64,000 nt of DNA, from IMG/VR virus record IMGVR_UViG_3300042922_001182, positions 124,001 to 188,000 of that record. One strand, given 5' to 3'. Shown here one piece after another: positions 3,803 to 42,604 of this stretch (the stretch's first letter is position 1; each line of letters starts with the position of its first letter). The notes beneath the pieces were generated by a model that had not been told where the DNA came from, ran no database searches, and saw only the letters and a program-made list of their open reading frames with translations. Both the position numbers and the translations under genes were made by a program.

Positions 3803-3811
3803 AAATATTAT
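3803..3811 (+). promoter_or_regulatory. early-type promoter motif AAATATTAT
   Basis: Variant of the recurring ATATTAT motif, upstream of a small plus-strand cassette. Confidence 0.6.
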
Positions 3812-3844
3812 TTTGGTGAGCAGATGAAGAAAGGACCTATCATC

Positions 3845-4210
3845 ATGAATCTTAGCACCGCCGCTCGCCTCCTCGACATGGGCCTCCTGGCTCGCTCCAA
3901 GAGGAAGATCGTCGTCAACTCCGAGGACCTGGACAAGGTCATGGAGCTGGCGGCCAAGGTCAACTCACCGGGGGCCCGTATCAGCACCGATGGCCACGAC
4001 GTCACCGTCGAGCACGCCGGTGGCGTGGACACCTACCAGGTGTTCTGGAGAGGCCACAAGCAGCTCCTGGCGTCGGAGTGCCCGGCCTACAAGAAGATCC
4101 TGGACAAACAGGACTTCACGGCCAATCTTGGTCGGCTGTCCGACCTCAACCCGGAAGAGTCTATGATCCTGCCCCTGGATTTCGGTGAATTCGAGGAGCC
4201 CCAGTTCTAA
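3845..4210 (+). CDS. hypothetical protein (putative early)
   Basis: ORF; RBS AAAGGA before ATG 3845 (alternative start 3824). Confidence 0.75.
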   Translation: MNLSTAARLLDMGLLARSKRKIVVNSEDLDKVMELAAKVNSPGARISTDGHDVTVEHAGGVDTYQVFWRGHKQLLASECPAYKKILDKQDFTANLGRLSDLNPEESMILPLDFGEFEEPQF

Positions 4211-4246
4211 CCCAACCGCTTAGCCTCCCGAAAGGAGACAATTACA

Positions 4247-4390
4247 ATGAAGAACAACATCGACGTTACCAAGCCCGAAGATCTCGCCAGCATTTTCACC
4301 TACAAAAAGGCCGAGACCAAGAAGACCACGAAGACCGTTCAGCCCGACGTCACCGATCCCAAGTACCTTCGGTCCATCTTTTCCTACTAG
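4247..4390 (+). CDS. 47-aa small protein with internal duplicated motif (not in ORF track)
   Basis: RBS AAAGGAG, then MKNNIDVTKPEDLASIFTYKKAETKKTTKTVQPDVTDPKYLRSIFSY*. Confidence 0.7.
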   Translation: MKNNIDVTKPEDLASIFTYKKAETKKTTKTVQPDVTDPKYLRSIFSY

Positions 4391-4433
4391 CGCCCCACCA
4401 CTTCCACGCCCTCCCGAAAGGAGACACTCCACC

Positions 4434-4823
4434 ATGTACAAGAACAACGCCATCAAGCCCATGCACTCCGAGGTTGAGGAGGCCAAGCTGGCACACTGGC
4501 ACGTCATCCGCGACACCCTCAAAGGGGTGGACAAGGTCAACGGCGAGGAGATCAAGCTCATCCAGCTGACCAGCGACCTCACGGTCTTGGTCCAGACGGT
4601 CATGGGCTTCTACGAGATGGTCATCGACGGTGACTCGGTGGTCGCTCGCCCCTGCGTTATGACCATCGAGGATATCGACCTCCCCGTCATCTGCACCATC
4701 TACCGCGATATCAACCTCATCGGTAAAAATGATCGCAAGTCCACTGCCAAGGAGAAGATCGATACCACCGAGGTAAACCCTGCGACCTCCCTCGGTTCGA
4801 TGCTCGGCGGTATGTTCAGCTAA
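4434..4823 (+). CDS. hypothetical protein (putative early)
   Basis: ORF with RBS AAAGGAG, followed by a terminator. Confidence 0.75.
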   Translation: MYKNNAIKPMHSEVEEAKLAHWHVIRDTLKGVDKVNGEEIKLIQLTSDLTVLVQTVMGFYEMVIDGDSVVARPCVMTIEDIDLPVICTIYRDINLIGKNDRKSTAKEKIDTTEVNPATSLGSMLGGMFS

Positions 4824-4862
4824 AAAGAAAAGGGGTACCCGGTGGGTACCCTCTTCTTTTTT
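4822..4862. terminator. bidirectional intrinsic terminator
   Basis: A-rich tract, GGGTACCC-based stem-loop, T-rich tract, between convergent genes. Confidence 0.8.
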
Positions 4863-4935: not shown

Positions 4936-6540
4936 CTAGGCGGGCATCGTGCCGTTGTTGTTGAGGATGGTGATCTCGCACGCCACCGGGTTCAGCTCCT
5001 CGATGGTGTCGCGACGGGTGACCATGATGTTCGGCACGTTGCCGTTCATCGGGTCGCGGTAGTCGCGCTCCACGTTGAAGGTGTACGGGTAGTACTTGAA
5101 CGTCATCTGCTTGTTGCTGGAGGGGATGAAGATCATGCGGATCTTGCCCTGCGGCACGTTGTCGGACGACACCACGGCGTAGCGGTTGGCCGCGCCGGAC
5201 ACCACGCCGAAGTTGTAGTTCACGTCCACGCCGCCCATGTCGGCCGTCGCGTTGGTGAACTGCCACTCCACGCCCACGAGCACGGCGGCGTCGATGGGGT
5301 TGCAGATGATGGCGTAGGAGCCGGAGTAGTACGAGGAGTCCGACTTCATCTTGTTGGCGAAGTAGTCGATGACGCCGCGCAGCTCCTTCTTCCACTCGGT
5401 CGGCGAACCGGCGTAACCGGCCGACGGGTGGCAGTCGAAGGAACCCTGGTAGATCTCGCCGTGGAAGTGGAACGAGCGATCCAGGAACTTCAGGATCTCG
5501 CGGTCGACCTTCTGGGCGTGGACGTTGGAGATGATGTCAACCGCCTCCAGCGCCGAGTCGATGTTGTACAGGGCCAGGTTGTCCTGCAGGAACTCGATGG
5601 GCAGGGGCGAGTTGATGTGGGCGCCGGTGCCGATGACGACTTCCTTCAGGCGGATGTCGAAGCCGACGGCCTCGCCGTGGTTGCTGTTCTCATCCGTCAG
5701 GTAGCCGCGAACGACGACGCTCTTGGCGGTGCCTTCGACCGAGGTCAGGCGCAGCAGGCCGGTGACGCGGTCCAGGGCGCCCGTCAGGGTGCAGACCACG
5801 GTCTTGGCGGTGGGGGCGGCGGAGTCGGTGTAGGGCACGACGACCTCGCCGAAGAGGCGGTTGTCGTTGCTGAGGCGCAGCTCGACATCCTCGACCAGCA
5901 CGTCGACGGTGGTGGTGTCGGTCTTGGTGACGGTCACGGTGACCTTGTCGATGACGAAGTTGGCGTCGATCGAGTCACCGGCCTCCAGCGAGGCGCCAGC
6001 GACCAGCGTGATCAGGTTCACGCCCTTGGCGGGCATGGTGATCGGGTCGGTCGACAGCTTGGTCTTCTCCAAGATGGTGTCGGCGTCGGTGCGCATCGCC
6101 TGCGGCAGGTAGGCCTTGGTGCCGTCCTGGCGCTTGATGTAGGGGGTCAGCCAGGAGATCGAGAACTTCGGCAGGCGGACCGCCTCGGTGGGGATCGCCA
6201 TCTTGAGGCCGATCTTGGGCCACGACTTGCGGATCATGGGCATCGACAGGGCCGACACCGCCGCGATGTTCGCGGTCACGCTCTCGCTCAGGAAGTGGGT
6301 GCGGTTGTTCTTGATGAGCTGCTCGAAGGCAGCGGCATCCTCGGCCCGCAGACCCTTGCTGAGGAGCTCGATGTAGCTCTCGAAGTACGCCTGGTCGGCC
6401 ATGATTTCCTTCACGCCCTCCAGGGTGGTGACGCGCACACGGTCGCCTTCGAACTTCTCGGCGGCCTCGCGGATCACCTGAGACGCCTTGTCGGTCGTGA
6501 CGGGCGCCTGGTGCATGCTGGGGTAGATAATCTCGGACAT
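4936..6540 (-). CDS. major capsid protein precursor (T4 gp23/AR9-like)
   Basis: 534 aa; FLSE processing-like site followed by SMPMIRKSWP, PIEFLQD...IDSALE...VDREIL and C-terminal PNIMVTRR, typical of gp23-like capsids; strongly biased codons; own late promoter. Confidence 0.88.
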   Translation of the reverse strand: MSEIIYPSMHQAPVTTDKASQVIREAAEKFEGDRVRVTTLEGVKEIMADQAYFESYIELLSKGLRAEDAAAFEQLIKNNRTHFLSESVTANIAAVSALSMPMIRKSWPKIGLKMAIPTEAVRLPKFSISWLTPYIKRQDGTKAYLPQAMRTDADTILEKTKLSTDPITMPAKGVNLITLVAGASLEAGDSIDANFVIDKVTVTVTKTDTTTVDVLVEDVELRLSNDNRLFGEVVVPYTDSAAPTAKTVVCTLTGALDRVTGLLRLTSVEGTAKSVVVRGYLTDENSNHGEAVGFDIRLKEVVIGTGAHINSPLPIEFLQDNLALYNIDSALEAVDIISNVHAQKVDREILKFLDRSFHFHGEIYQGSFDCHPSAGYAGSPTEWKKELRGVIDYFANKMKSDSSYYSGSYAIICNPIDAAVLVGVEWQFTNATADMGGVDVNYNFGVVSGAANRYAVVSSDNVPQGKIRMIFIPSSNKQMTFKYYPYTFNVERDYRDPMNGNVPNIMVTRRDTIEELNPVACEITILNNNGTMPA

Positions 6541-9349: not shown

Positions 9350-12300
9350 TTACATGCTCTCGATCTGGGGGCTGACCCAGACGTCGAGCTGCGTGTTGAT
9401 GGGAGCGAAACGGCGCTTGATCGGGATCTCGGAGAGATCGCCGTAGACGCCGGTGGCATCGCCCTCTAGGTTGGTGGCGTCTCCACTCAGCCCGGAGACG
9501 TCGCCGGTGAGCCCGCCGATGTTGCCGGAGAGGTTCGACACGTCTCCCTTGAGGCCGAAGTCGATCGCGGCGATGACCGCGCCGAGGTCGGCGTTCTTGA
9601 GGACGTTCGCGCCCATCTCGACCAGCTCCGACTGGACGCTCTCGATCAGGGCCTTGACGGCGTTTGAAGCCGTTGCGATCGACTCGATCTCCTGGCGGGT
9701 GCCGTGCGCCACGTCGGCGTTGGCCTGCCGGAAGATCTCGTACGGGGGCTGGTTGGCCGGGACCTGGACCTCCTCCAGTTTGACGAGCGTCCCCGCCTTC
9801 GTCTCGAACCCGCCTAGGCTCCCGGTTGCCACCGACAGCGTCTGCTTGATGGCCTCGACACCGGAGACGATGGCCACGATGATGTTGACGCCGTCGTAGA
9901 CCGAGTTGTAGAGGTCGTCGGCGTTGTCCTCCGTCTCCCAAGCCTTCTTGCGAAGGTCCCTGGCCTCGGTCCGCAGCGCCGCCCTGAGCCTGGTGGCCCT
10001 GGTGAACGCGTCGGAGTCCTTGGTGATGGAGTCCGCCATGCTGAAGGCGGAGTCGCAGGCGGCCCCGATCATCGCGGTGATGGACGCGACCGTGGTGCCT
10101 GGGATGAGCCTGCTCCTGGTCGAATCAGAGGCGACGCCCGCCGTCATGGTGGCGCTCGCAGCCTTGAGGGCCTTGAGCTCCGTGACGGCCAGCGGGACGT
10201 GCTCCCTCAGCTCGGCGATCCTGGTGTCGGTGGCCGCCGACGAGTCGACGGTCGTCATGAGCATCTGGTCGACCCGGGCCATGAGGAGGGTCAGCCTGTC
10301 CACCATCGCCTTCAGCTTCTCCAGGGCATGCGCTGGGGTCTCGATGAACGGGACGAAGACGGAGGAGGACGACTGCACGAAGCCGTTGTAGGTGTTGGCT
10401 TGACCGAGGGCCAGGTTCGAGACCGTCGCCATGGCGTCCAGGGAGTCGCTGATATCCTGCCTCACATCGGCGGATGGCATCAGCGTCTCCGAGGCCTGGA
10501 TGAACGCCTTGGCATCCGCCAGGGCGGTGTTCAGCGCTCCGAAACCAAGCGGCTCCTGAGGGGTTCCGCCGCCCACGATGGCCTGTACCATGGCCTGGGT
10601 CTGGGTCTTGAAGGGAGAGGTGGCCCCTGGTACGATGTCCTTCAGCGTACCGAGGATGTCCTGGGGCCTATTCCCCTGCAGCAGGGAGTCCAGCTCTCCG
10701 ATCTTCTGGGCCGTGAGGGAGAAGGAGTTGGCGATGGCGTTCATCTTCACCGACAGGTTCTCGTCGAACCCGACCCGCACCAGGCTCTCGTCGTGCAGGC
10801 CGAAGGCCGAGACCCTGATCGTGGAGCAGCGGGTCGCTAGCGCCGTGACGGGGCCGTCGATCGTCGTCCTGATGTACGCCAGGGCGCTGGAGTAGAGGGT
10901 GATATCCGAGAGGTTGGAGGTGATGACGCTGACGTTGGACAGCAGCTCCTCGATGGCGCCCTGGGACTGGCCGAAGCCGGTGATCTCCTCTCCTCCTTCG
11001 ACTTCCACGATGTAGGGTGCGACCTTGGATCGGAAGGACGAGTTGAGGGTGTTCAGGGCAGTGCTGACCTGGTTGGAGGAGTTCGTCGCGTCGGTGTGCT
11101 TCGTGTTCTCGTCGGCGGTCAGCGACGAGTTGCTGGTGTAGGCATCCCTGGCCACGGTCGTCACCTGGTCCCCGATCTCGAACACCTTGGTCCTGATCTC
11201 CTTGGAGAACTCCGTGGAGTAGGGGGCCAGGGTGCCGGTGACGGGGGCCTTGTGGGCCTCGATGTAGGTGAGGAGCGAGTCCACCGAGGTCTTGACCGCG
11301 TTGATGGATGCTGAGATCGATGTCCGTGAGGCCGCCTCGTACGGAGAGGTCCCTGCCGTGACCGACGTTCGGACGTGCTCAAGGGTCTCGTAGAGACGGT
11401 AGTCATCCGGCCCTGCCACGGTCCCCGATGCCTTCATGGAGACGGAGATCTCCTCAAGGATGGCGTTGATAGCCTCGTGGAGCTGGAGCATGTCCGCCTG
11501 GCCCACCGAGGGCATCGACGCCTCTCTGGCCAGGTCAGCCAGCTGGAGCGAGAGGCTGCTAGCCGCCTGCGACAGGGAGACCGCGTTCGGGATGCTGGCC
11601 TCGATGACCTCGCTCATGAAGTCGCTTCTCTGTTGCATCGCAGTAGCAAAGAGCGCCAGCGAACCCGTATCCGCACCGCCCCCCGTGCCGGGGGTAAGGA
11701 GCGAATCCGCCTTGGTCTTGAGGTCGTCGAGAAGGGGCGGGTAGGACGCCGCGAGGGAGCGCTTGACCACGAGATAGTCGGAGTTCTCCGTCGCCCCAGC
11801 GGACGTTTCTTGGGCAGCTGCCGCCAGGTTATCGGCGGCCTCCGTGGCAGAGTCCCGGAGCTGTTCCGACACGAGGTCGTCCAGGGTCCCCGGTACTTTT
11901 GCGGCGGCGCTCAAAGCGTTGCAGAGGATAAGCAGCTGAGAGGCTTTCCCCTTGAGCGCCAGAGACGCGTCAACGGCGTTCTGCTCGGTCGGGTAGGGGA
12001 GGGTGGTGTGAGATAGGAAGTTCTCGATTAGAGAAAGACTGCTCTCGCACGCCTGAAGCTGTGTTGTCACCTGGTCGTAGGACGAGGAGATCGCCGCCGT
12101 GTAGGAGTCGATGCCGTCCAGCTCCAGGCCGAAGGCCGTGGAGCGGCTCGCGAGCTCCCCCTGGATGGTGGTAACTGCGGCCTCCTCTACGGCGACTGCG
12201 GCGGTTTCCTCGGCAGTCGCCGCAAGGGGATCGAGCGCCAGCTTGGCCTTGAAGTCGATCACCTTGGTCTTGATCTGGTTGGCGGCCAGGTCCACAGCCG

Positions 12301-13972
12301 AGTTCTTGGCCGCTGCGACCGATGTACTGGAAGCGGCGGTCATCTCGGTGGCGGCCAGGTCCATCGCATCCGCCTTGGAACGGATGTCGGTAGGGTGTCC
12401 GGAGACCACCGCCAGCAGGGACTTCTTATCGTCGTAGGCCGGGCGGATGGCCGCGACCGCATTGACGATGGTCGCGCAGTAGTCGGTGATGGCCTCGATC
12501 GAGGTCGCCACACCGTCCTTGTCGTTCTCCGGTACGGACGCGTAGTTCGTGTCCACCCAATTCTGGACGGGGGTCAGCGCGGTGGTGACCTCGTCGGTGT
12601 GCCCCGACGCGGCCGTCATCGCGGCCTCCGCGTTGGCCTGGTTGAGGGTGGCGCCGGAGGCAGCGGTCGAAAGGGCCGTGATATCCGCTTCGAGGACGGC
12701 GATAGCGGCCAGCAGGTCATCTGCCAGGTCGTTGAAGGTGGCGTTCCCCGGAGTGTTTACCAGCTTGTCCTTGAGGTCTGAGGTCTCGGTGGACGCCTGG
12801 TCGATCGCCTCCCCGACCGAGTTGGCGGCGGCGCTGCAGTACGCCTTTAGGTTGAGCAGGCTGTCGATGGAGGTGGCGAAGGCCCTGGCCTTGGAGGAGA
12901 GCTCCGAGGACTTCTCGGAGACCCCGCTGATGTGAGGCGCCTTCGAATCCTCGTAGAGGCCCGCCTCCGAGATGGTGTCGAGCGCCTCCGTCAGGGTGTC
13001 GACGGCCGACCGGATGGAAGGGACATACGTGTTCAGGTTGTTGGTGGTGTCCACCTCAGAGGCAAGCGACGAAGACAGACCTTGGAGTAATGAGCTGACC
13101 TGCAGCGCCGACGCCCTTGCGATCAGGGCGTCGGCGGATATCTTCTGCGATGGGTTGGTGAGCTTCGCCGTCTCCTGGCGAACGGAGTTGATCGCCCCTG
13201 AGGCGGTCTCGGCCAGGGAGGCGGCGTTGCTGGACATGGACGCCGCAAGCACGGCGGAGTTGCAGGCGTTCAGGAAGGTCATCTCCGCATCGAAGGCGAC
13301 CTGGGACAGGCTACCAGCGATGTCCTTGAAGCTGTCGGCGGCCCCCATGACCGCGTCCATGATGTCCCTGTCGGTCCCGGCCTCGGGCATAGCCATCACC
13401 GCGTCCGCCAGGGCGTTGAACAGAGGGGTACCGAGGCTGGGGAGCTCGACCTTGATGAGGCCGTAGATCCTTGAGCAGTCCCCCTCCAGGGTGGTGATCA
13501 TCCCGGCCAGGCCGGACACGTCTCCGCTGAGCCCGGTGGCGTCCCCCCAGACCTTGGAGACGTCGCCCCTGAGGCCGGACACGTCGCCGCTGAGCATGGC
13601 CACGAGCCCGGAGATGTTGCTGACGTTGCCCCTGATGGCGTTGGTGATGCCGTAGATCCGCGTGCAATCGCCTTCGAGCTTCGTCACGTCCCCGATGAGA
13701 CCGGACACGTCGCCGCTCAGCTTGGAAACGTCGCCAGCGATCTTGGTGATGTCGCCGCTGATGTTGGAGCAGTCGCCGTAGATCATGCCGGTCAGCATGC
13801 CGCGAAGGCCGGAGCAGTCGCCCCTGAGCCCCATGGCGGTCCCCGTGATGTTGGAGCAGTCGCCCCTGAGCTCGAAGATGTTGACCACCAGACCGAGACG
13901 CGGGCCGCTGATGGGCAGCCTGTGCGTCGCGAGATCGTGGTGGTAGAGTCTCTTCTTCTTCCTTACAAGCAT
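9350..13972 (-). CDS. 1540-aa protein: heptad (LxGDxSx) repeat arrays at both ends around a ~1300-aa Ala/Ser/Thr-rich helical region
   Basis: RBS GGAGG; about 19 LSGDVSG-like repeats near the N-terminus and about 6 at the C-terminus; function not recognised. Confidence 0.8.
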   Translation of the reverse strand: MLVRKKKRLYHHDLATHRLPISGPRLGLVVNIFELRGDCSNITGTAMGLRGDCSGLRGMLTGMIYGDCSNISGDITKIAGDVSKLSGDVSGLIGDVTKLEGDCTRIYGITNAIRGNVSNISGLVAMLSGDVSGLRGDVSKVWGDATGLSGDVSGLAGMITTLEGDCSRIYGLIKVELPSLGTPLFNALADAVMAMPEAGTDRDIMDAVMGAADSFKDIAGSLSQVAFDAEMTFLNACNSAVLAASMSSNAASLAETASGAINSVRQETAKLTNPSQKISADALIARASALQVSSLLQGLSSSLASEVDTTNNLNTYVPSIRSAVDTLTEALDTISEAGLYEDSKAPHISGVSEKSSELSSKARAFATSIDSLLNLKAYCSAAANSVGEAIDQASTETSDLKDKLVNTPGNATFNDLADDLLAAIAVLEADITALSTAASGATLNQANAEAAMTAASGHTDEVTTALTPVQNWVDTNYASVPENDKDGVATSIEAITDYCATIVNAVAAIRPAYDDKKSLLAVVSGHPTDIRSKADAMDLAATEMTAASSTSVAAAKNSAVDLAANQIKTKVIDFKAKLALDPLAATAEETAAVAVEEAAVTTIQGELASRSTAFGLELDGIDSYTAAISSSYDQVTTQLQACESSLSLIENFLSHTTLPYPTEQNAVDASLALKGKASQLLILCNALSAAAKVPGTLDDLVSEQLRDSATEAADNLAAAAQETSAGATENSDYLVVKRSLAASYPPLLDDLKTKADSLLTPGTGGGADTGSLALFATAMQQRSDFMSEVIEASIPNAVSLSQAASSLSLQLADLAREASMPSVGQADMLQLHEAINAILEEISVSMKASGTVAGPDDYRLYETLEHVRTSVTAGTSPYEAASRTSISASINAVKTSVDSLLTYIEAHKAPVTGTLAPYSTEFSKEIRTKVFEIGDQVTTVARDAYTSNSSLTADENTKHTDATNSSNQVSTALNTLNSSFRSKVAPYIVEVEGGEEITGFGQSQGAIEELLSNVSVITSNLSDITLYSSALAYIRTTIDGPVTALATRCSTIRVSAFGLHDESLVRVGFDENLSVKMNAIANSFSLTAQKIGELDSLLQGNRPQDILGTLKDIVPGATSPFKTQTQAMVQAIVGGGTPQEPLGFGALNTALADAKAFIQASETLMPSADVRQDISDSLDAMATVSNLALGQANTYNGFVQSSSSVFVPFIETPAHALEKLKAMVDRLTLLMARVDQMLMTTVDSSAATDTRIAELREHVPLAVTELKALKAASATMTAGVASDSTRSRLIPGTTVASITAMIGAACDSAFSMADSITKDSDAFTRATRLRAALRTEARDLRKKAWETEDNADDLYNSVYDGVNIIVAIVSGVEAIKQTLSVATGSLGGFETKAGTLVKLEEVQVPANQPPYEIFRQANADVAHGTRQEIESIATASNAVKALIESVQSELVEMGANVLKNADLGAVIAAIDFGLKGDVSNLSGNIGGLTGDVSGLSGDATNLEGDATGVYGDLSEIPIKRRFAPINTQLDVWVSPQIESM

Positions 13973-14776: not shown

Positions 14777-15574
14777 CTAGCCTTCCGAGTCGAACAGGTT
14801 GTCGATCTCGCCCTCGGCGACCTTGGTCACGGGGGACTTGCCGCCGACGGCGGGGGCGCCGGGCAGCTCGCGGCGGCGGCGGCGCTGACCGCCACCCTGG
14901 ACGGACTCCGTGGCCTCGCGGCGGGGCTGGTTGCCGCCAGCGGGAGCGGGACCGGCGGACAGCAGGTGCTCCTTGTTGCAGACGCGCTCAGCCGCCTGGA
15001 GGAAGCTCTCCAGGGTGTCCAGCTCGTGGTTGAACTTGTGGGTGTGGTCCGAGTGGCCGTCGTCGTCGGGGTTGAGGGTGATGACGCGGTGCAGCGCCTC
15101 CTCGGGAAGGATGTAGATGTTGTCGGCCTTGATCTTGCCGTCGGCGTCGTACTCCTTGAGGGCCAGGTACCACAGGCCGATCTCGTTCGGGGCGAGCTCG
15201 GTCTCGTCATCGATCGCCATGTCGTTGCCGATGATGAGGACCTTCTTGCCGTTGCGGCCGGGGTGGGCGATGGCGAACGACTGCACGCCGCTGGTCTCGG
15301 GGTCCTTGATCCAGGTGAGGCCCTGCTGGATGCCCTTCACGTCGCCGAGGTCGACCTGGAAGAAGACCTTCGCGTCGTGGTTGTACATCTGGAGGCCCTT
15401 CTGGGGCTCCTTGCCAGCGTGCTCCTTGAAGACCGGCGACAGGCTGAAGAAGGCCTTGTCCTGCCAGAAGCCCAGCTCCAGGGCGCCGTAGTTGTTGTTG
15501 TAGAGGATATGGGCTCGGACAGACGTGCCCTTCTGCTGGGTGTCCTGGCCGCCGTTGGCGTTCTGCTCGGTCAT
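14777..15574 (-). CDS. putative single-stranded DNA-binding protein
   Basis: Beta-rich aromatic N-domain, G/P-rich linker, acidic tail EGEIDNLFDSEG, next to DNA polymerase; function inferred. Confidence 0.5.
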   Translation of the reverse strand: MTEQNANGGQDTQQKGTSVRAHILYNNNYGALELGFWQDKAFFSLSPVFKEHAGKEPQKGLQMYNHDAKVFFQVDLGDVKGIQQGLTWIKDPETSGVQSFAIAHPGRNGKKVLIIGNDMAIDDETELAPNEIGLWYLALKEYDADGKIKADNIYILPEEALHRVITLNPDDDGHSDHTHKFNHELDTLESFLQAAERVCNKEHLLSAGPAPAGGNQPRREATESVQGGGQRRRRRELPGAPAVGGKSPVTKVAEGEIDNLFDSEG

Positions 15575-15611
15575 TTCCGGGGTGTCCTTTCTCTCGTTGG
15601 GGGAATTGCGG

Positions 15612-15623
15612 TATCGACTTGTT
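15612..15623 (-). promoter_or_regulatory. AACA-N6-TA promoter
   Basis: Minus strand AACA AGTCGA TA upstream of 15574. Confidence 0.7.
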
Positions 15624-15668
15624 GGGGCCCCCCTAACCGGATAAGCTAGGGGGGAACCCGAGACGCTC

Positions 15669-16432
15669 CTAGAACGTCACGATGTTGCTGTACTGGGAAC
15701 CAGCCGGTGTCTTGATCACCTTGAGGTCCATGCTCTCAAGAACGATGAAGCCGTTCCTGACGTTGTCGGAGGCGATGGTGTCCATGTCGATGAACTGGAT
15801 CAGCCACTCCGGGATGCGGTCGACCGACTTGGGGATGGCCAGGATGGTGAACCCGAACCGCTCCATCTTGGGGCTCTTGAAGACCGCCCTGTGGATGGCC
15901 TCGTACTGCGGGGTGCCGAAGATGGGGGCGAGGTCGCCGATCTTCTCCGCCTTCATCTTGAACAGGAGCACGTCCTCCGGGGCCGACAAGACCGGGAGTC
16001 TCTCCTCCGGGGGCAGCGCCTCCTGGAGGGCGTTCCACACGATGGAGCCGCGCACGGGGGCCTGGGTGTACGGGGCCTTGTACGCGCCGGAGCCGTCGAT
16101 GTACTCGTCGTTCGCGTCGCGGTCGCCGGGGTCGTTGAGGCGACCGGGCACGCCGAAGGTCACCTCGCCACGGGCCAGGCTCTCCTTCACGGACTTCTCG
16201 AACTCGCGGAACTTGCCCAGGACCCCGGACGTGCTCATGTCATCCGAGCCGAGGACGTCGTCCTTGATCAGCTTGGTGAAGAACTGGCGGGTGGTCTTGT
16301 TGACCGTGGTCTTCTTGATCGACAGGCCCTTGATGTCCAGCTTGGGCGGATCGATGATCGTGCCCTCCTGGGCCTTCAGGAGCCCGGCGTACTGCTTCTT
16401 GTTGTTGGTGGTCATCAACCTTGTGTAGAGGA
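15669..16432 (-). CDS. polB: family-B DNA polymerase, exon 2
   Basis: After splicing reads (F)LYTRLMTTNNKKQYAG...LDIKGLSIKK, the PolB KKxY and KG motifs; no RBS of its own. Confidence 0.9.
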
Positions 16433-16624
16433 CTCGGTGTTCACCCGGGGTCGCAGGTCCCGGATCGCCCCTAGGGGCAGCTGCGCGTCTCCGCGCAGGA
16501 CAGACTATATCATCACCCGCTTGGGGTGCCTCCCGTTTGGGGTACCATTGGCTTGTACCCTACGTGCATAAAGCACTAGTCGTTGAACCTTCCCGAAAAA
16601 AGTGAAACTACCCGTCCGTCGACC

Positions 16625-16633
16625 ACATATTCT
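16625..16633 (+). promoter_or_regulatory. early-type promoter motif ACATATTCT inside intron loop L6
   Basis: CGACC-ACATATTCT, one mismatch to the ACATATTAT motif seen at 32846 and 50816. Confidence 0.6.
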
Positions 16634-16710
16634 TTACATGAGCAAGATAGGATTTAGGGTCCGTACTATCATGCCTACGTCAGCACAGGATCCCTTTAGG
16701 AGGAATAACA

Positions 16711-16896
16711 ATGCTCAGCTCTTTGTTCAACGGTATCGGTGGCGCTGTGGAGTCCATCGGCAACGGCGTGTTCGGCGCGGTAGACGAGATCTTGGACGGC
16801 ACCTGGAAGGCCGGTGAGAGCATCGTCAAGGGCGTCGGCGGTGCGGCCGATGGGGCCTGCAAGGCGGTCGACTCGCTGTTCGGCGACATCGACTAG
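16711..16896 (+). CDS. 61-aa amphipathic 11-mer-repeat peptide, antisense within the group I intron
   Basis: Strong RBS AGGAGG, C/G-ending codons like other genes, flanked by promoter motif and terminator. Confidence 0.8.
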   Translation: MLSSLFNGIGGAVESIGNGVFGAVDEILDGTWKAGESIVKGVGGAADGACKAVDSLFGDID

Positions 16897-16902
16897 TCCA
16901 TA

Positions 16903-16936
16903 GGAGGCGGGGGTAACACCCCGCCTCTCTTTTTTT
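16903..16936 (+). terminator. intrinsic terminator of the intron-nested gene
   Basis: GAGGCGGGG-loop-CCCCGCCTC followed by TCTTTTTTT. Confidence 0.85.
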
Positions 16937-17033
16937 CGGGCTTGGCTGCTGATTACCCGCTTCGGGCTTCCCAGCAATTAGAGAGGTTTGCATACGGGCG
17001 TTGCCACCCGTAGGAGCTAGGCCACGCGGGCCA

Positions 17034-18252
17034 ACTCGTTCTTCATGTTGATGATGGGGCGCTTGTCCTCGGGGATGTTCATGTTCCTGGTCAGGGTGGC
17101 GTAGGTGCTCTCGATGACCCTGGCGAGCAGGTAGATGACGACGTTGACGACGCTCACGCGGTCGACGTCCTCCTTCGTCTTGGCCCCCAGCTCGTCGCGG
17201 CAGAACCGGACGAAGGGGTCGACGTTGATGAAGTTGGAGTCCGTGTCCACCACCAGGACGGCGGCCCTGGGGTCCTGCTCGGCCCGCTGGAAGTGGTCCT
17301 CCGGGATGTGGTCGTGGTACACGAAGTGTGCCAGGTAGCCCCAGAGCTCCTTGAGGTAGGGCAGGACGTCCTCCGCCGGGTGGTCGGCGTTCGTGACCTT
17401 GAGGTCGCTGGCGAACAGGGATTCAAGCACCTTCCTGGCGTTGGCGCACCGGCGCAGGAACTCGTAGAGGTTGTTGCGGAAGAAGACTCGCGCCACCTCG
17501 TAGGGGTCCAGGGAGGACACGGCCTTGAGCAGGATCGCCCGCGCCTCGTCGGAGGGGTGCTTGCGGAACCTGGACAGCAGGTGGCCCATGAGCTCGTCGT
17601 GGGTCGGGGGATTGTCGAGGACCCACACCCTGTCCGCGCTGCGCTGGGACTCCTCCGGCATGCAACGCTCGACGAACAGCAGCGCCTCCGACAGGTCGTT
17701 GAACGGGCAGTTACCGGCGAGGAACTGCTCGAAGGCCATGACCGACGCGGTGATGATCGTGCGACCCGTGTACGTGACGCTGGGGCCGACTCGCGGGTTG
17801 AAGAAGATGCAGTTCTTCTCGCCCGACGCGCCGTAGTAGGAGTTGGCCAGGAGCTTGATCGTCTTCTGGTCGCGGTCGTAGTTGTCGTGGAGGGTGCGGT
17901 CCACGTCGTTGACGTGGGCCAGCATCTTCTTCTTCGCCACCTTGCGGCTCTTCATGAGCCACTCCAGCATGGCCGCGATCAGGTTGATCGAGTTGGAGTG
18001 CTGCTTGTAGGCGGTCCCGTAGGGCGTGAACACCGGCTGGTGCTTGCCCAAGAGGAAGTCCGAGAACTGCAGGACGTCGATCTGCTTGTCCGCCCCGGTC
18101 GTGTCGTTGTTGAAGGAGCACCCCGGCTTCCTCACCCTCTCGTCGACGATCGCGTCGACCTTGGCCCGGATGGCCTCGGGGTCCCTGTCGGGGAACTGGC
18201 GGACCAGGACCTCCATGACCTCTGCCTTGTAGGCCTCAAGAGTTGCTGACAT
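17034..18252 (-). CDS. polB: family-B DNA polymerase, exon 1 (spliced product 660 aa)
   Basis: Motif B QKTIKLLANSYYG, SVTYTGR, motif C VVDTDS, ends IINMKNE at the splice site; RBS GGGAGG. Confidence 0.92.
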
Positions 18253-18281
18253 GTTTAGTTTCCTCCCGTCTCTGTGGGTGA

Positions 18282-18293
18282 TACCGGGGTGTT
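18282..18293 (-). promoter_or_regulatory. AACA-N6-TA promoter for DNA polymerase
   Basis: Minus strand AACA CCCCGG TA, 30 nt upstream of the ATG. Confidence 0.7.
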
Positions 18294-18311
18294 CCGGGCG
18301 GCCCTATTGGC

Positions 18312-19184
18312 CTAGAAGTAGAACCGTTGTCCGCCGACGCCGAAGCTGTGGAAGCCGTGGACCTTCGCCACCGCTTGCCTAACGTCGTTCTCGTCCTTGG
18401 TGATGTACGTACCGCAGTCGTACCGCAGGCTGTCGGGGATACCGTCTCCGTAGTGGACCAGCACCGTCTTCGCCCGGACCCACATCGAGAGCTCCCGATG
18501 GAGCTGCCAGAAGTTGGTATGGACGTCGCTCTTACCGGCGTTCGGGCCGACGAACATCTGGCAGTCGTGGAAGACCATGTCCAGGTCCTTGCCAAGGGTG
18601 CGGTACGGGTACTGCTCAAGGAGCATCGGGTGGATCTCCTTGCAGTCGCTGGTCCAGAGCACCCGCTGGTCGATGAGCAGGCCCCAGCTGTCGTGGCCGT
18701 GGACGTGCTTCATCTTCACGGGTTTCAGGTGGATGTTCTCGAACGTCATGGTCGTCTTTTCGTTGAAAAGCGCCACGTCGAAGTAGGTGCTGATGTCCGC
18801 CTTAACGTGATTGTCCTCCTCGTCCTGTATGTCGAGCATGCCTCCAGAGAGGACGCCGCTCCACAGGGTTCCGACCTGGTCCTCCGAGACGAAGAGCCTC
18901 AGCTTGCGGCCCTTGACGAAGTAGTAGTAGAACCCCAGCGTCTCCAGGCCACCGGCGTGGTCGTCGTGGAGGTGGGTGATGTAGACCGCATCGATCTTGT
19001 CCACGGAGCCGTTCTCCATGATCCGACGAACGGTGTCTGGGCTAGCGTCGATGAGCAGGTTGTATTCTTTCCCGTGGTCCCAGTTCTTCCAGGTGAGCAG
19101 GGCGTTGGTGTTTCCGAGTCCGGTCCTCGACATGGCGGAACCCACCCCGATGAGGGTCAGGCAAAACTTCTTCTTGTTGGACAC
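18312..19184 (-). CDS. metallo-beta-lactamase-fold hydrolase (RNase Z/phosphodiesterase-like)
   Basis: LIGVGSA, LLID, ITHLHDDHAGG (HxHxDH), WTSD, VH and VHY motifs. Confidence 0.88.
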   Translation of the reverse strand: MSNKKKFCLTLIGVGSAMSRTGLGNTNALLTWKNWDHGKEYNLLIDASPDTVRRIMENGSVDKIDAVYITHLHDDHAGGLETLGFYYYFVKGRKLRLFVSEDQVGTLWSGVLSGGMLDIQDEEDNHVKADISTYFDVALFNEKTTMTFENIHLKPVKMKHVHGHDSWGLLIDQRVLWTSDCKEIHPMLLEQYPYRTLGKDLDMVFHDCQMFVGPNAGKSDVHTNFWQLHRELSMWVRAKTVLVHYGDGIPDSLRYDCGTYITKDENDVRQAVAKVHGFHSFGVGGQRFYF

Positions 19185-19200: not shown

Positions 19201-19872
19201 CTAGCTGCTAAGCCCGCCGTGCAGCCGCACGGCCATCTGCTCGTCGATCTCCGCGACGACGGACTGGAGTAGGACGGACTTGTTGTACACCCAGCTCTCC
19301 CGGACGAAGCGGAGGGCCTCCCACGGCAGGCCCCTGGCCGCCTCGTTGCCGGAGGACCACTCCTGGTGGCACCACAGGGCGAACTCCAGGCGGTCGGCCA
19401 CCTTCACGATGTCCGCGATGGCGTCGGTCTTGTGCTCCGACGAGAAGGTCCACACCTGACGGATGAGCTTCTCGATGCGGTCCCTGACCTCCACGGGGAC
19501 GAACCTGCGGAAGCCGTCCCGGATCAGGCTGGCGACGTAGCCCTCGTGGGCCCTGTCGGCTGCCCCGGCGATGGCCTTCTTCAGGTTCTCGTCGCCGTTC
19601 TTGAAGGGGCCGCTGACGTCCCCCGTGATGGCCTCGTCGTAATCGTGGAGGATGGCCGCCCTGAGCACCTTGCCGGAGTCCACGTCGTTGATGTCCATGT
19701 CCTCGACGAGCATCATGCAGATGAACGCCACCTGGAACGAGTGGGCGGAGACCGATTGCGGTTGGTTGACCCGCAGCCCCGGGGCCCGCCAGGTGTAGTC
19801 CAGCTTGCGGGCGAGCTCGAATGCCTTGATCATTGATGAATCTCCTCGGGCCATCTCCAGGCCCCCTTGCAT
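19201..19872 (-). CDS. HD-domain 5'-deoxynucleotidase (YfbR-like); exact start uncertain
   Basis: QSVSAHSFQVA, ILHDYDEAITGD, IVKVADRLE motifs. Confidence 0.85.
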   Translation of the reverse strand: MQGGLEMARGDSSMIKAFELARKLDYTWRAPGLRVNQPQSVSAHSFQVAFICMMLVEDMDINDVDSGKVLRAAILHDYDEAITGDVSGPFKNGDENLKKAIAGAADRAHEGYVASLIRDGFRRFVPVEVRDRIEKLIRQVWTFSSEHKTDAIADIVKVADRLEFALWCHQEWSSGNEAARGLPWEALRFVRESWVYNKSVLLQSVVAEIDEQMAVRLHGGLSS

Positions 19873-20940: not shown

Positions 20941-20961
20941 AACCTGCTTCCGTGGTACAAT
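20933..20961 (+). promoter_or_regulatory. sigma70-like promoter TTGCGT-N17-TACAAT with extended -10 TG
   Basis: Exact 17-bp spacing and TGgTACAAT, 40 nt upstream of the beta'-C start. Confidence 0.5.
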
Positions 20962-21001
20962 CGGGGGTGCCCCGCACCCCGCTAGCTCCTGGGAGGAACA
21001 C

Positions 21002-42517: not shown

Positions 42518-42604
42518 CGGTACAATCGGAGGGGCGTAGGGGCCGGGAGACCGGTCCCTACGCTCAACTCTACAGTTCGGAAAACAAACCGAGGAGACAA
42601 GATA

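Follow-up and report, generated by a model that had tools for sequence, protein, structure and literature searches.

A phage group I intron with a small putative gene on the opposite strand of its P6a loop

Phage group I introns are usually seen as vehicles for homing endonucleases or as the empty shells of such vehicles. The locus analysed here raises the question whether an intron inside an essential phage gene can instead house an unrelated gene, written on the opposite strand and equipped with its own expression signals. An earlier note, made from the sequence alone, had claimed exactly this for the DNA polymerase gene (polB) on the minus strand of a 64,000-nt stretch of DNA (the window), which is part of the 238,984-bp viral contig IMGVR_UViG_3300042922_001182, a metagenome assembly. 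What the note described proved to be present almost to the base, and its interpretation was supported in every part that can be examined in silico, with three reservations given below.

The intron and its counterparts in related contigs

Several features indicate that the contig belongs to a jumbo phage of the AR9/phiKZ type, which encodes its own multisubunit RNA polymerases: weak, sub-threshold matches to RNA polymerase β and β′ domains (Rpb2 domain 6 in a 1383-aa protein, Rpb1 domain 2 in a 503-aa protein), above-threshold matches to a gp23-type capsid protein and a T4-type terminase, and a polymerase belonging to the Pfam family "divergent family B DNA polymerase" (PF20286). Its named homologues, at 37% identity, are from Bacillus phages vB_BsuM-Goe21 and Internexus, each with a genome of about 250 kb. 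The closest homologue found by the protein search was only 42% identical, and a blastn search of the region against 50,697 GenBank phage records gave only three short core matches; thus, no close relative was found with these searches that could show the same intron with or without its cargo.

The Rfam group I model (RF00028) matched positions 16481-17043 on the minus strand over its full length (1-253) with 57.3 bits (gathering score 50, E 6.5e-12), and this was the only hit in the window, even at E 0.1. Exon 1 ends with AACGAGT, the exon GAGU pairs with an internal GCUC, U17034 lies opposite G17017, and the intron ends with ACACCGAG. All elements named by the earlier note were located in the sequence and, except for P7, they also formed as helices in an unconstrained minimum free energy fold of the 608-nt RNA (P1, P2, P3, P4/P5, P6, P6a, P7.1, P7.2, P8, P9 and two further 3′ hairpins); P7, being a pseudoknot strand, was read from the Rfam alignment (Table 1). 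The extra helices P7.1 and P7.2 between P3′ and P7 are the mark of the phage-type subgroup IA2, to which the intron corresponds in this respect. When the two exons, which had been searched separately, were joined in silico, a protein of 660 aa without internal stop resulted. Over the roughly 90 alignment columns examined around the junction, it aligned without a gap at the junction to 12 intact homologues within INMKNE|F[LF]Y.R[LI]M.T.NKK.YAG, one of the most conserved stretches of the enzyme. Shifting the junction by one base would give E-V-L or an intron not ending in G, and only the junction from T17034 to T16432 restores the conserved E-F/Y-L sequence. The splice sites proposed in the note are therefore correct.

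Table 1. Positions of the features of the polB locus in the window
Feature	Positions	Strand	Description and basis
polB exon 1	17034..18252	-	406 codons plus the first base of the split Phe codon; divergent family B DNA polymerase; PF20286 at 4.7e-26, PF00136 at 6.5e-15, PHROG 2927 at 3.3e-63; 195 homologues at E<=1e-10, the listed full-length ones about 630-680 aa
Group I intron	16433..17033	-	601 nt; phase 1, after MKNE; terminal G16433
polB exon 2	15669..16432	-	last two bases of the Phe codon, 253 codons, stop; PF20286 at 2.8e-14, PHROG 2927 at 3.2e-30; aligns with homologues directly after the junction
P1, exon strand GAGU	17037-17034	-	U17034-G17017 pair
P1, internal guide GCUC	17014..17017	-	read from the sequence
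P2	17011-17005/17000-16994	-	GCAA loop
P3	16986-16981/16534-16529	-	CCUCUC/GGGAGG
P4/P5	16977-16946	-	
P6a 5′ strand	16931..16940	-	CCCGAAAAAA; its A-run is the T-run of the terminator on the plus strand
P6a 3′ strand	16592..16601	-	UUUUUUCGGG
P6a terminal loop	16602..16930	.	329 nt, the inserted cassette
P7.1	16576-16564	-	hairpin
P7.2	16560-16540	-	hairpin
P8	16528-14	-	
P7		-	strands GACUA/UAGUC
P9	16498-16481	-	
Early-promoter-like motif	16625..16640	+	ACATATTCT at 16625-16633, six bases, G16640 (predicted transcript start)
Shine-Dalgarno sequence	16698..16703	+	AGGAGG, 7 nt before the ATG, after a leader of about 70 nt
61-aa ORF	16711..16896	+	ATG to TAG; pI 4.05, net charge -6; predicted single amphipathic helix
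Intrinsic terminator	16903..16936	+	hairpin 16903-16928 with 10-bp stem (8 G-C pairs) and 6-nt loop, C16929, T7 at 16930-16936; -22.9 kcal/mol, z -3.87

Several homologues in the protein search stop right after MK[NS]E, and the contigs encoding them were examined at this site. Of seven related contigs (L002-L006, L009 and L010), four (L002, L003, L004 and L005) contain an intron of about 1 kb, at the same codon phase as the window intron, with homologous sense-strand 260-264-aa treble-clef zinc-finger ORFs in the P6 loop. L006 contains an intron of about 266 nt without an ORF. L010 contains ORF-less group I introns at this site (74.7 bits) and at a second site after D[IV]KG (95.7 bits), and L009 contains a group II intron instead (RF00029 at 67.9 bits). 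Rfam missed the introns of L002, L004 and L006, the boundaries of which were placed by protein alignment and by eye. The introns of L003, L004 and L006 use the same GAGU/GCUC pairing for P1 as the window intron. The sense ORFs of L002-L004 are homologous to one another (38-56% identity) and carry a treble-clef zinc finger (PF14311) with faint PD-(D/E)XK-like hits. They begin just after the P6 5′ strand behind their own Shine-Dalgarno sequence and thus occupy the P6 loop in the way usual for a homing endonuclease, despite the fact that no nuclease domain reached significance. With its 329-nt loop left out, the window intron aligns colinearly with these relatives, and the ORF-less L010 introns have a short closed P6a hairpin exactly where the window has its loop.

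A 61-codon ORF antisense to polB

P6a of the window intron is a perfect 10-bp helix looping out 329 nt, where the earlier note had estimated about 325. On the plus strand, this loop contains the promoter-like motif, Shine-Dalgarno sequence, 61-codon ORF and terminator that the note had listed. GC-rich DNA produces many long ORFs, and three minus-strand ORFs of 55-93 aa overlap the 61-codon ORF in the same loop; its length is therefore no argument for a gene. However, four independent lines of evidence support one. First, GC at codon positions 1/2/3 is 0.61/0.46/0.87, compared with about 0.57/0.38/0.93 for confident genes of this phage, whereas the minus-strand ORFs show either the shadow pattern or none (GC3 of 0.53-0.80); the binomial probability of 53 G/C in 61 third positions at 60% GC is about 4e-6. 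Second, a codon log-likelihood trained on 32 long genes of the phage gave +0.65 bits per codon for the ORF and negative values for the other five frames. In-frame 61-codon windows of real genes average 0.79 (sd 0.25), which places the ORF at the 24th percentile, and only 1 of 1275 wrong-frame windows reaches its score. The remainder of the intron scores negative in every frame tested on its own strand. Third, the Shine-Dalgarno sequence and its spacing are those of the phage's confident genes (the ones with the GC1>GC2 pattern), which mostly have AGGAGG, GGAGG or AAGGAG at this distance. Fourth, the hydrophobic moment of the product has one sharp peak at 98-99 degrees (3.65 residues per turn) that is coherent over all 61 residues; its value of 1.66 compares with 0.50 (sd 0.15) in 2000 shuffles, none of which reached it (z 7.5). 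AlphaFold2 without an alignment predicted one helix over residues 2-58 (pLDDT 82), with a hydrophobic face of L/I/V/F/A, a polar face of D/E/K and Gly/Ala flanks. The hairpin behind the ORF is strong compared with its control and is followed by one C and seven T on the plus strand, but by CCUAUGG rather than a U-run on the polB strand, so it should not stop polB transcription.

These results bear on the possibility that there is no gene at all, i.e., that the loop is a structural extension of P6, or a decayed sense-strand endonuclease gene (named beforehand as an outcome that would overturn the interpretation), and that the plus-strand ORF arose by chance. This reading, for which the frequency of ORFs in GC-rich DNA and the sense ORFs of the relatives could be cited, is already disfavoured and considered very unlikely. 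The sense frames have negative codon scores, and Pfam, PHROG and NCBIfam searches returned no nuclease family (GIY-YIG, HNH, LAGLIDADG, His-Cys, PD-(D/E)XK or EDxHD) for any ORF in the loop. The ORFs of the related introns gave no meaningful match to the window intron (best E 0.03 against a 601-nt target at word size 2) and none to the window. No remnant of an endonuclease gene is left in the window, whereas the plus frame passes the tests of codon usage, amphipathicity and terminator strength against their controls.

The 61-aa protein itself has no homologue in any database searched, and only one genome carries the cassette; support for the gene therefore rests on sequence properties and not on conservation. 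A word-index search gave no candidate, and a full HMMER scan of 1.84 billion representatives gave four hits, which are all repeat or low-complexity proteins matching through similar amphipathic or small-residue repeats, not relatives. Back-translated scans of viral, metagenome and genome contigs returned only the source contig, or nothing, and Pfam, PHROG, NCBIfam and PDB sequences gave nothing significant. The one recurring likeness is to the helical repeat part of siphophage tape measure proteins (PHROG 58 at E 0.0076, PHROG 305 at 0.096; tblastn against 50,697 phage records, hits in 41 records, with E 0.2-0.7 over 93-98% of the peptide in the 15 rows listed, nearly all under tape-measure annotations), which is not significant and is probably a likeness of form only. 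Neither a paralogue of the protein nor a second copy of the cassette DNA was found in the window or the related loci. No gene was on record for the ORF in the protein collections searched, and exon 1 of the polymerase was on record read through into the intron.

The promoter-like motif and the inferred role of the cassette

A scan for σ70 promoters found nothing in 15500-18500, and the relevant promoter type is the phage's own. The heptamer ATATTAT occurs seven times in the window, always in intergenic DNA and pointing at the next gene; five of the seven copies have G seven bases after the motif, and the three bases before it are most often C-A-Y. With at most one mismatch, ACATATTAT occurs six times, against 0.9 expected, and no shuffle reached six. 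A second candidate motif, GGTACAATCGG, is not over-represented. The pattern agrees with the experimentally mapped early promoter of AR9, AAATATATATTAT-(6N)-G(+1), which is recognised by the virion RNA polymerase (PMC5312081). The copy in the cassette, CAC-ATATTCT-ttacat-G, matches 9 of 10 positions of CAYATATTAT as well as the start base, but has C for A at the sixth position of the heptamer, where all seven exact copies have A. Because AR9 virion RNA polymerase is reported to be sensitive to single deviations, one predicted early promoter with one deviation having been inactive (PMC5312081), the promoter is considered about as likely to work as not, and the term "self-contained" used in the earlier note depends on it. 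This mismatch is also an argument for a stranded cassette, i.e., real coding sequence that arrived recently by illegitimate recombination, for example from another early unit of this or a related phage, and that, its mismatched promoter being dead, is silent and will decay, the intron merely tolerating it. GC3 and codon score slightly below the phage average would fit this view. However, the ORF, Shine-Dalgarno sequence and terminator are all intact, the CAC flank and the G at +7 match the consensus, the inactive AR9 example deviates at a different, upstream position, and the window contains no donor copy; this reading is therefore considered unlikely, though less so than the other alternatives.

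The explanation held with moderate confidence is the following. The sequence analysis itself establishes that the polymerase-domain family B DNA polymerase gene is interrupted by a group I intron that must be removed for the 660-aa enzyme to be made, that the terminal loop of P6a is where related introns at this site have a hairpin or a sense-strand endonuclease-type ORF, and that here it holds instead a 329-nt, moron-like plus-strand unit in the phage's own codon usage, the T-run of which doubles as one strand of P6a. Everything that concerns activity is inferred: that the intron self-splices; that the virion RNA polymerase makes a transcript of roughly 295 nt (16640 to about 16935) early in infection; that it is translated into a 6-kDa acidic amphipathic helix with 11/3 periodicity; and that this helix acts as an accessory early protein, most likely by lying on a membrane or lipid surface or by bundling with itself or a partner, which is a guess from its physical form. 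No ATATTAT lies on the minus strand upstream of polB within the window, so polB is probably transcribed by the other polymerase at another time, which would limit head-on collisions and duplex formation. In this view, the intron makes the insertion harmless, because the whole loop leaves the polB message at splicing; the cassette probably replaced a homing endonuclease gene or entered an ORF-less P6a hairpin, and the intron then persists by vertical descent. The "neutral landing site" proposed in the earlier note remains an inference from one genome. The window holds another unit of the same build at 3805-4862 (an early motif at 3805, three small genes and a terminator near 4826-4862), antisense to late neighbours including the capsid gene. 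Such cassettes are therefore part of this genome's normal architecture and a plausible source.

Alternatively, the main product may be an antisense RNA that pairs with the P6a loop of the polB pre-mRNA over roughly 295 bp and tunes splicing, stability or timing of the polymerase, the peptide being secondary. The transcript would be perfectly complementary to the loop by construction, and its promoter class differs from whatever drives polB. However, a pure antisense RNA needs neither a consensus Shine-Dalgarno sequence, nor an ORF in phage codon usage, nor a coherent amphipathic pattern over 61 residues, and, according to work on the T4 td intron, the P6a loop is reportedly the part of such introns least needed for catalysis; this reading is considered quite unlikely. 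A further, speculative and rather improbable possibility combines both views: group I introns in jumbo phages can serve as safe harbours that let independently transcribed accessory genes live inside essential genes, the early antisense transcript here also pairing with the loop, so that expression of the cargo and splicing or timing of the polymerase are coupled. If the intron indeed shelters an unrelated early gene, this would add a third fate for phage introns, and it would point to a place where accessory genes, such as host-takeover or anti-defence genes, are not looked for. As the same RNA segment is an intron loop on one strand and, by inference, a messenger on the other, the locus also offers a clean system in which the effect of antisense transcription on ribozyme folding and polymerase timing can be measured directly.

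Comparison with known systems

Literature searches, which included a review on bacterial introns and the 2025 intron database paper, found no phage or bacterial group I intron described with an antisense, non-endonuclease gene, although the collection searched is incomplete and the absence thus only suggestive. The separate ingredients are known elsewhere. Phage introns with an ORF looped out of P6a (T4 td/I-TevI type), and the introns at the same polB site in L002-L005, share with the window intron the ribozyme core with P7.1/P7.2, the position in a highly conserved stretch of an essential DNA-metabolism gene, and cargo in the terminal loop of P6/P6a with its own translation signals; here, however, the cargo is on the opposite strand, is 61 aa instead of about 250, has no nuclease or zinc-finger motif and ends in its own terminator. 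In AR9, a jumbo phage of the same broad group, g190 lies inside an intron of the late virion RNA polymerase gene g189 and has its own early promoter of the ATATTAT-(6N)-G type, so that it is expressed independently of its host gene (PMC5312081), but it is an HNH/AP2 homing endonuclease gene on the same strand as g189. I-DirII in the nuclear rDNA group I intron of Didymium iridis, and the L2066 introns, provide antisense protein genes transcribed from their own promoter (PMC3073962; PMC9548176); these are eukaryotic nuclear rDNA introns with a Pol II promoter, a spliceosomal intron and polyadenylation, and the cargo is still a homing endonuclease. Phage morons are compact promoter-gene-terminator units, oriented independently of their neighbours and encoding a small accessory protein, but they are inserted between genes, whereas the present unit is inside an essential gene and would be made harmless by RNA splicing. 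Finally, rps3 inside the fungal mitochondrial rnl group I intron is likewise a non-endonuclease gene housed in a group I intron, but it is a conserved, sense-strand housekeeping gene in an organelle.

Introns in the polymerase gene of related phages

The same polB site, after MKNE, holds a group II intron without an ORF in one related phage contig (L009), as judged from matches to RF00029 (67.9 bits) and RF02004 (46.8 bits), whereas the other relatives examined have group I introns there. A further gap follows before the next exon of L009. There is also a second intron hot spot in this polymerase family, directly after D[IV]KG (contigs L003 and L010; proteins P0077, P0092, P0101 and P0102). 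At this position, two further related contigs, L003 and L010, have ORF-less group I introns (81.7 and 95.7 bits, respectively) and thus carry two introns about 35 codons apart. In the window itself, no protein matching the 61-aa ORF was on record in the protein collections searched, and exon 1 of polB was on record as a 411-aa protein (P0001) read through into the intron. Automatic annotation appears to have missed both the intron and its cargo.

Coordinates of the additional features in the window and in related contigs
Feature	Sequence	Position	Strand
Exact ATATTAT motifs	window	3805, 20534, 32848, 50818, 57767	+
Exact ATATTAT motifs	window	59412, 32785	-
Early motif, three small genes and terminator	window	3805-4862	+
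gp23-like capsid gene	window	4936-6540	-
1540-aa repeat-containing protein	window	9350-13972	-
61-aa ORF	window	16711-16896	
411-aa protein on record for polB exon 1 (P0001), read through into the intron	window	17017-18252	
Metallo-beta-lactamase-fold protein and YfbR-like HD 5'-deoxynucleotidase	window	18312-19184 and 19201-19872	-
Exact 11-mer GGTACAATCGG	window	20954-20964 and 42519-42529	+
Group II intron at the polB site after MKNE	L009	2613-3153	
Group I intron after D[IV]KG	L003	4673-4934	
Group I intron after D[IV]KG	L010	4538-4749	
g205 with g206 and g207	L008 (AR9, KU878088)	23107-25442	

Genes and repeats elsewhere in the window

Directly upstream of polB lie a metallo-beta-lactamase-fold protein, which matches the anti-Pycsar family Apyc1 above threshold (PF23023, 6.7e-21), and a YfbR-like HD 5'-deoxynucleotidase (2.5e-21). 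Another gene of the window encodes a protein with runs of an 8-residue repeat, G-D-[VC]-S-x-[LI]-x-G, at both its N and C termini, and with an Ala/Ser/Thr-rich middle. The exact 11-mer GGTACAATCGG lies just after two stop codons and before the next gene; however, when mismatches were allowed, it was not over-represented (5 found against 12 expected).

Candidate early promoters and comparison with AR9

The seven exact ATATTAT motifs of the window (extended CAYATATTAT-6N-G) are all intergenic and all point at the next gene. One of them precedes three small genes (89, 47, and 129 aa) and a strong terminator, a unit that lies antisense to the flanking minus-strand genes, which include the gp23-like capsid gene; the two downstream genes of this unit are each preceded by the repeat CCTCCCGAAAGGAGACA. 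The motifs probably mark the virion RNA polymerase early promoters of this phage, and they match the 3' half of the AR9 early consensus. In AR9, g205, which encodes a virion protein and consists of three exons, has two small sense-strand hypothetical ORFs annotated inside its introns, g206 (47 aa) and g207 (51 aa), and g189 of the same phage is joined from six pieces.
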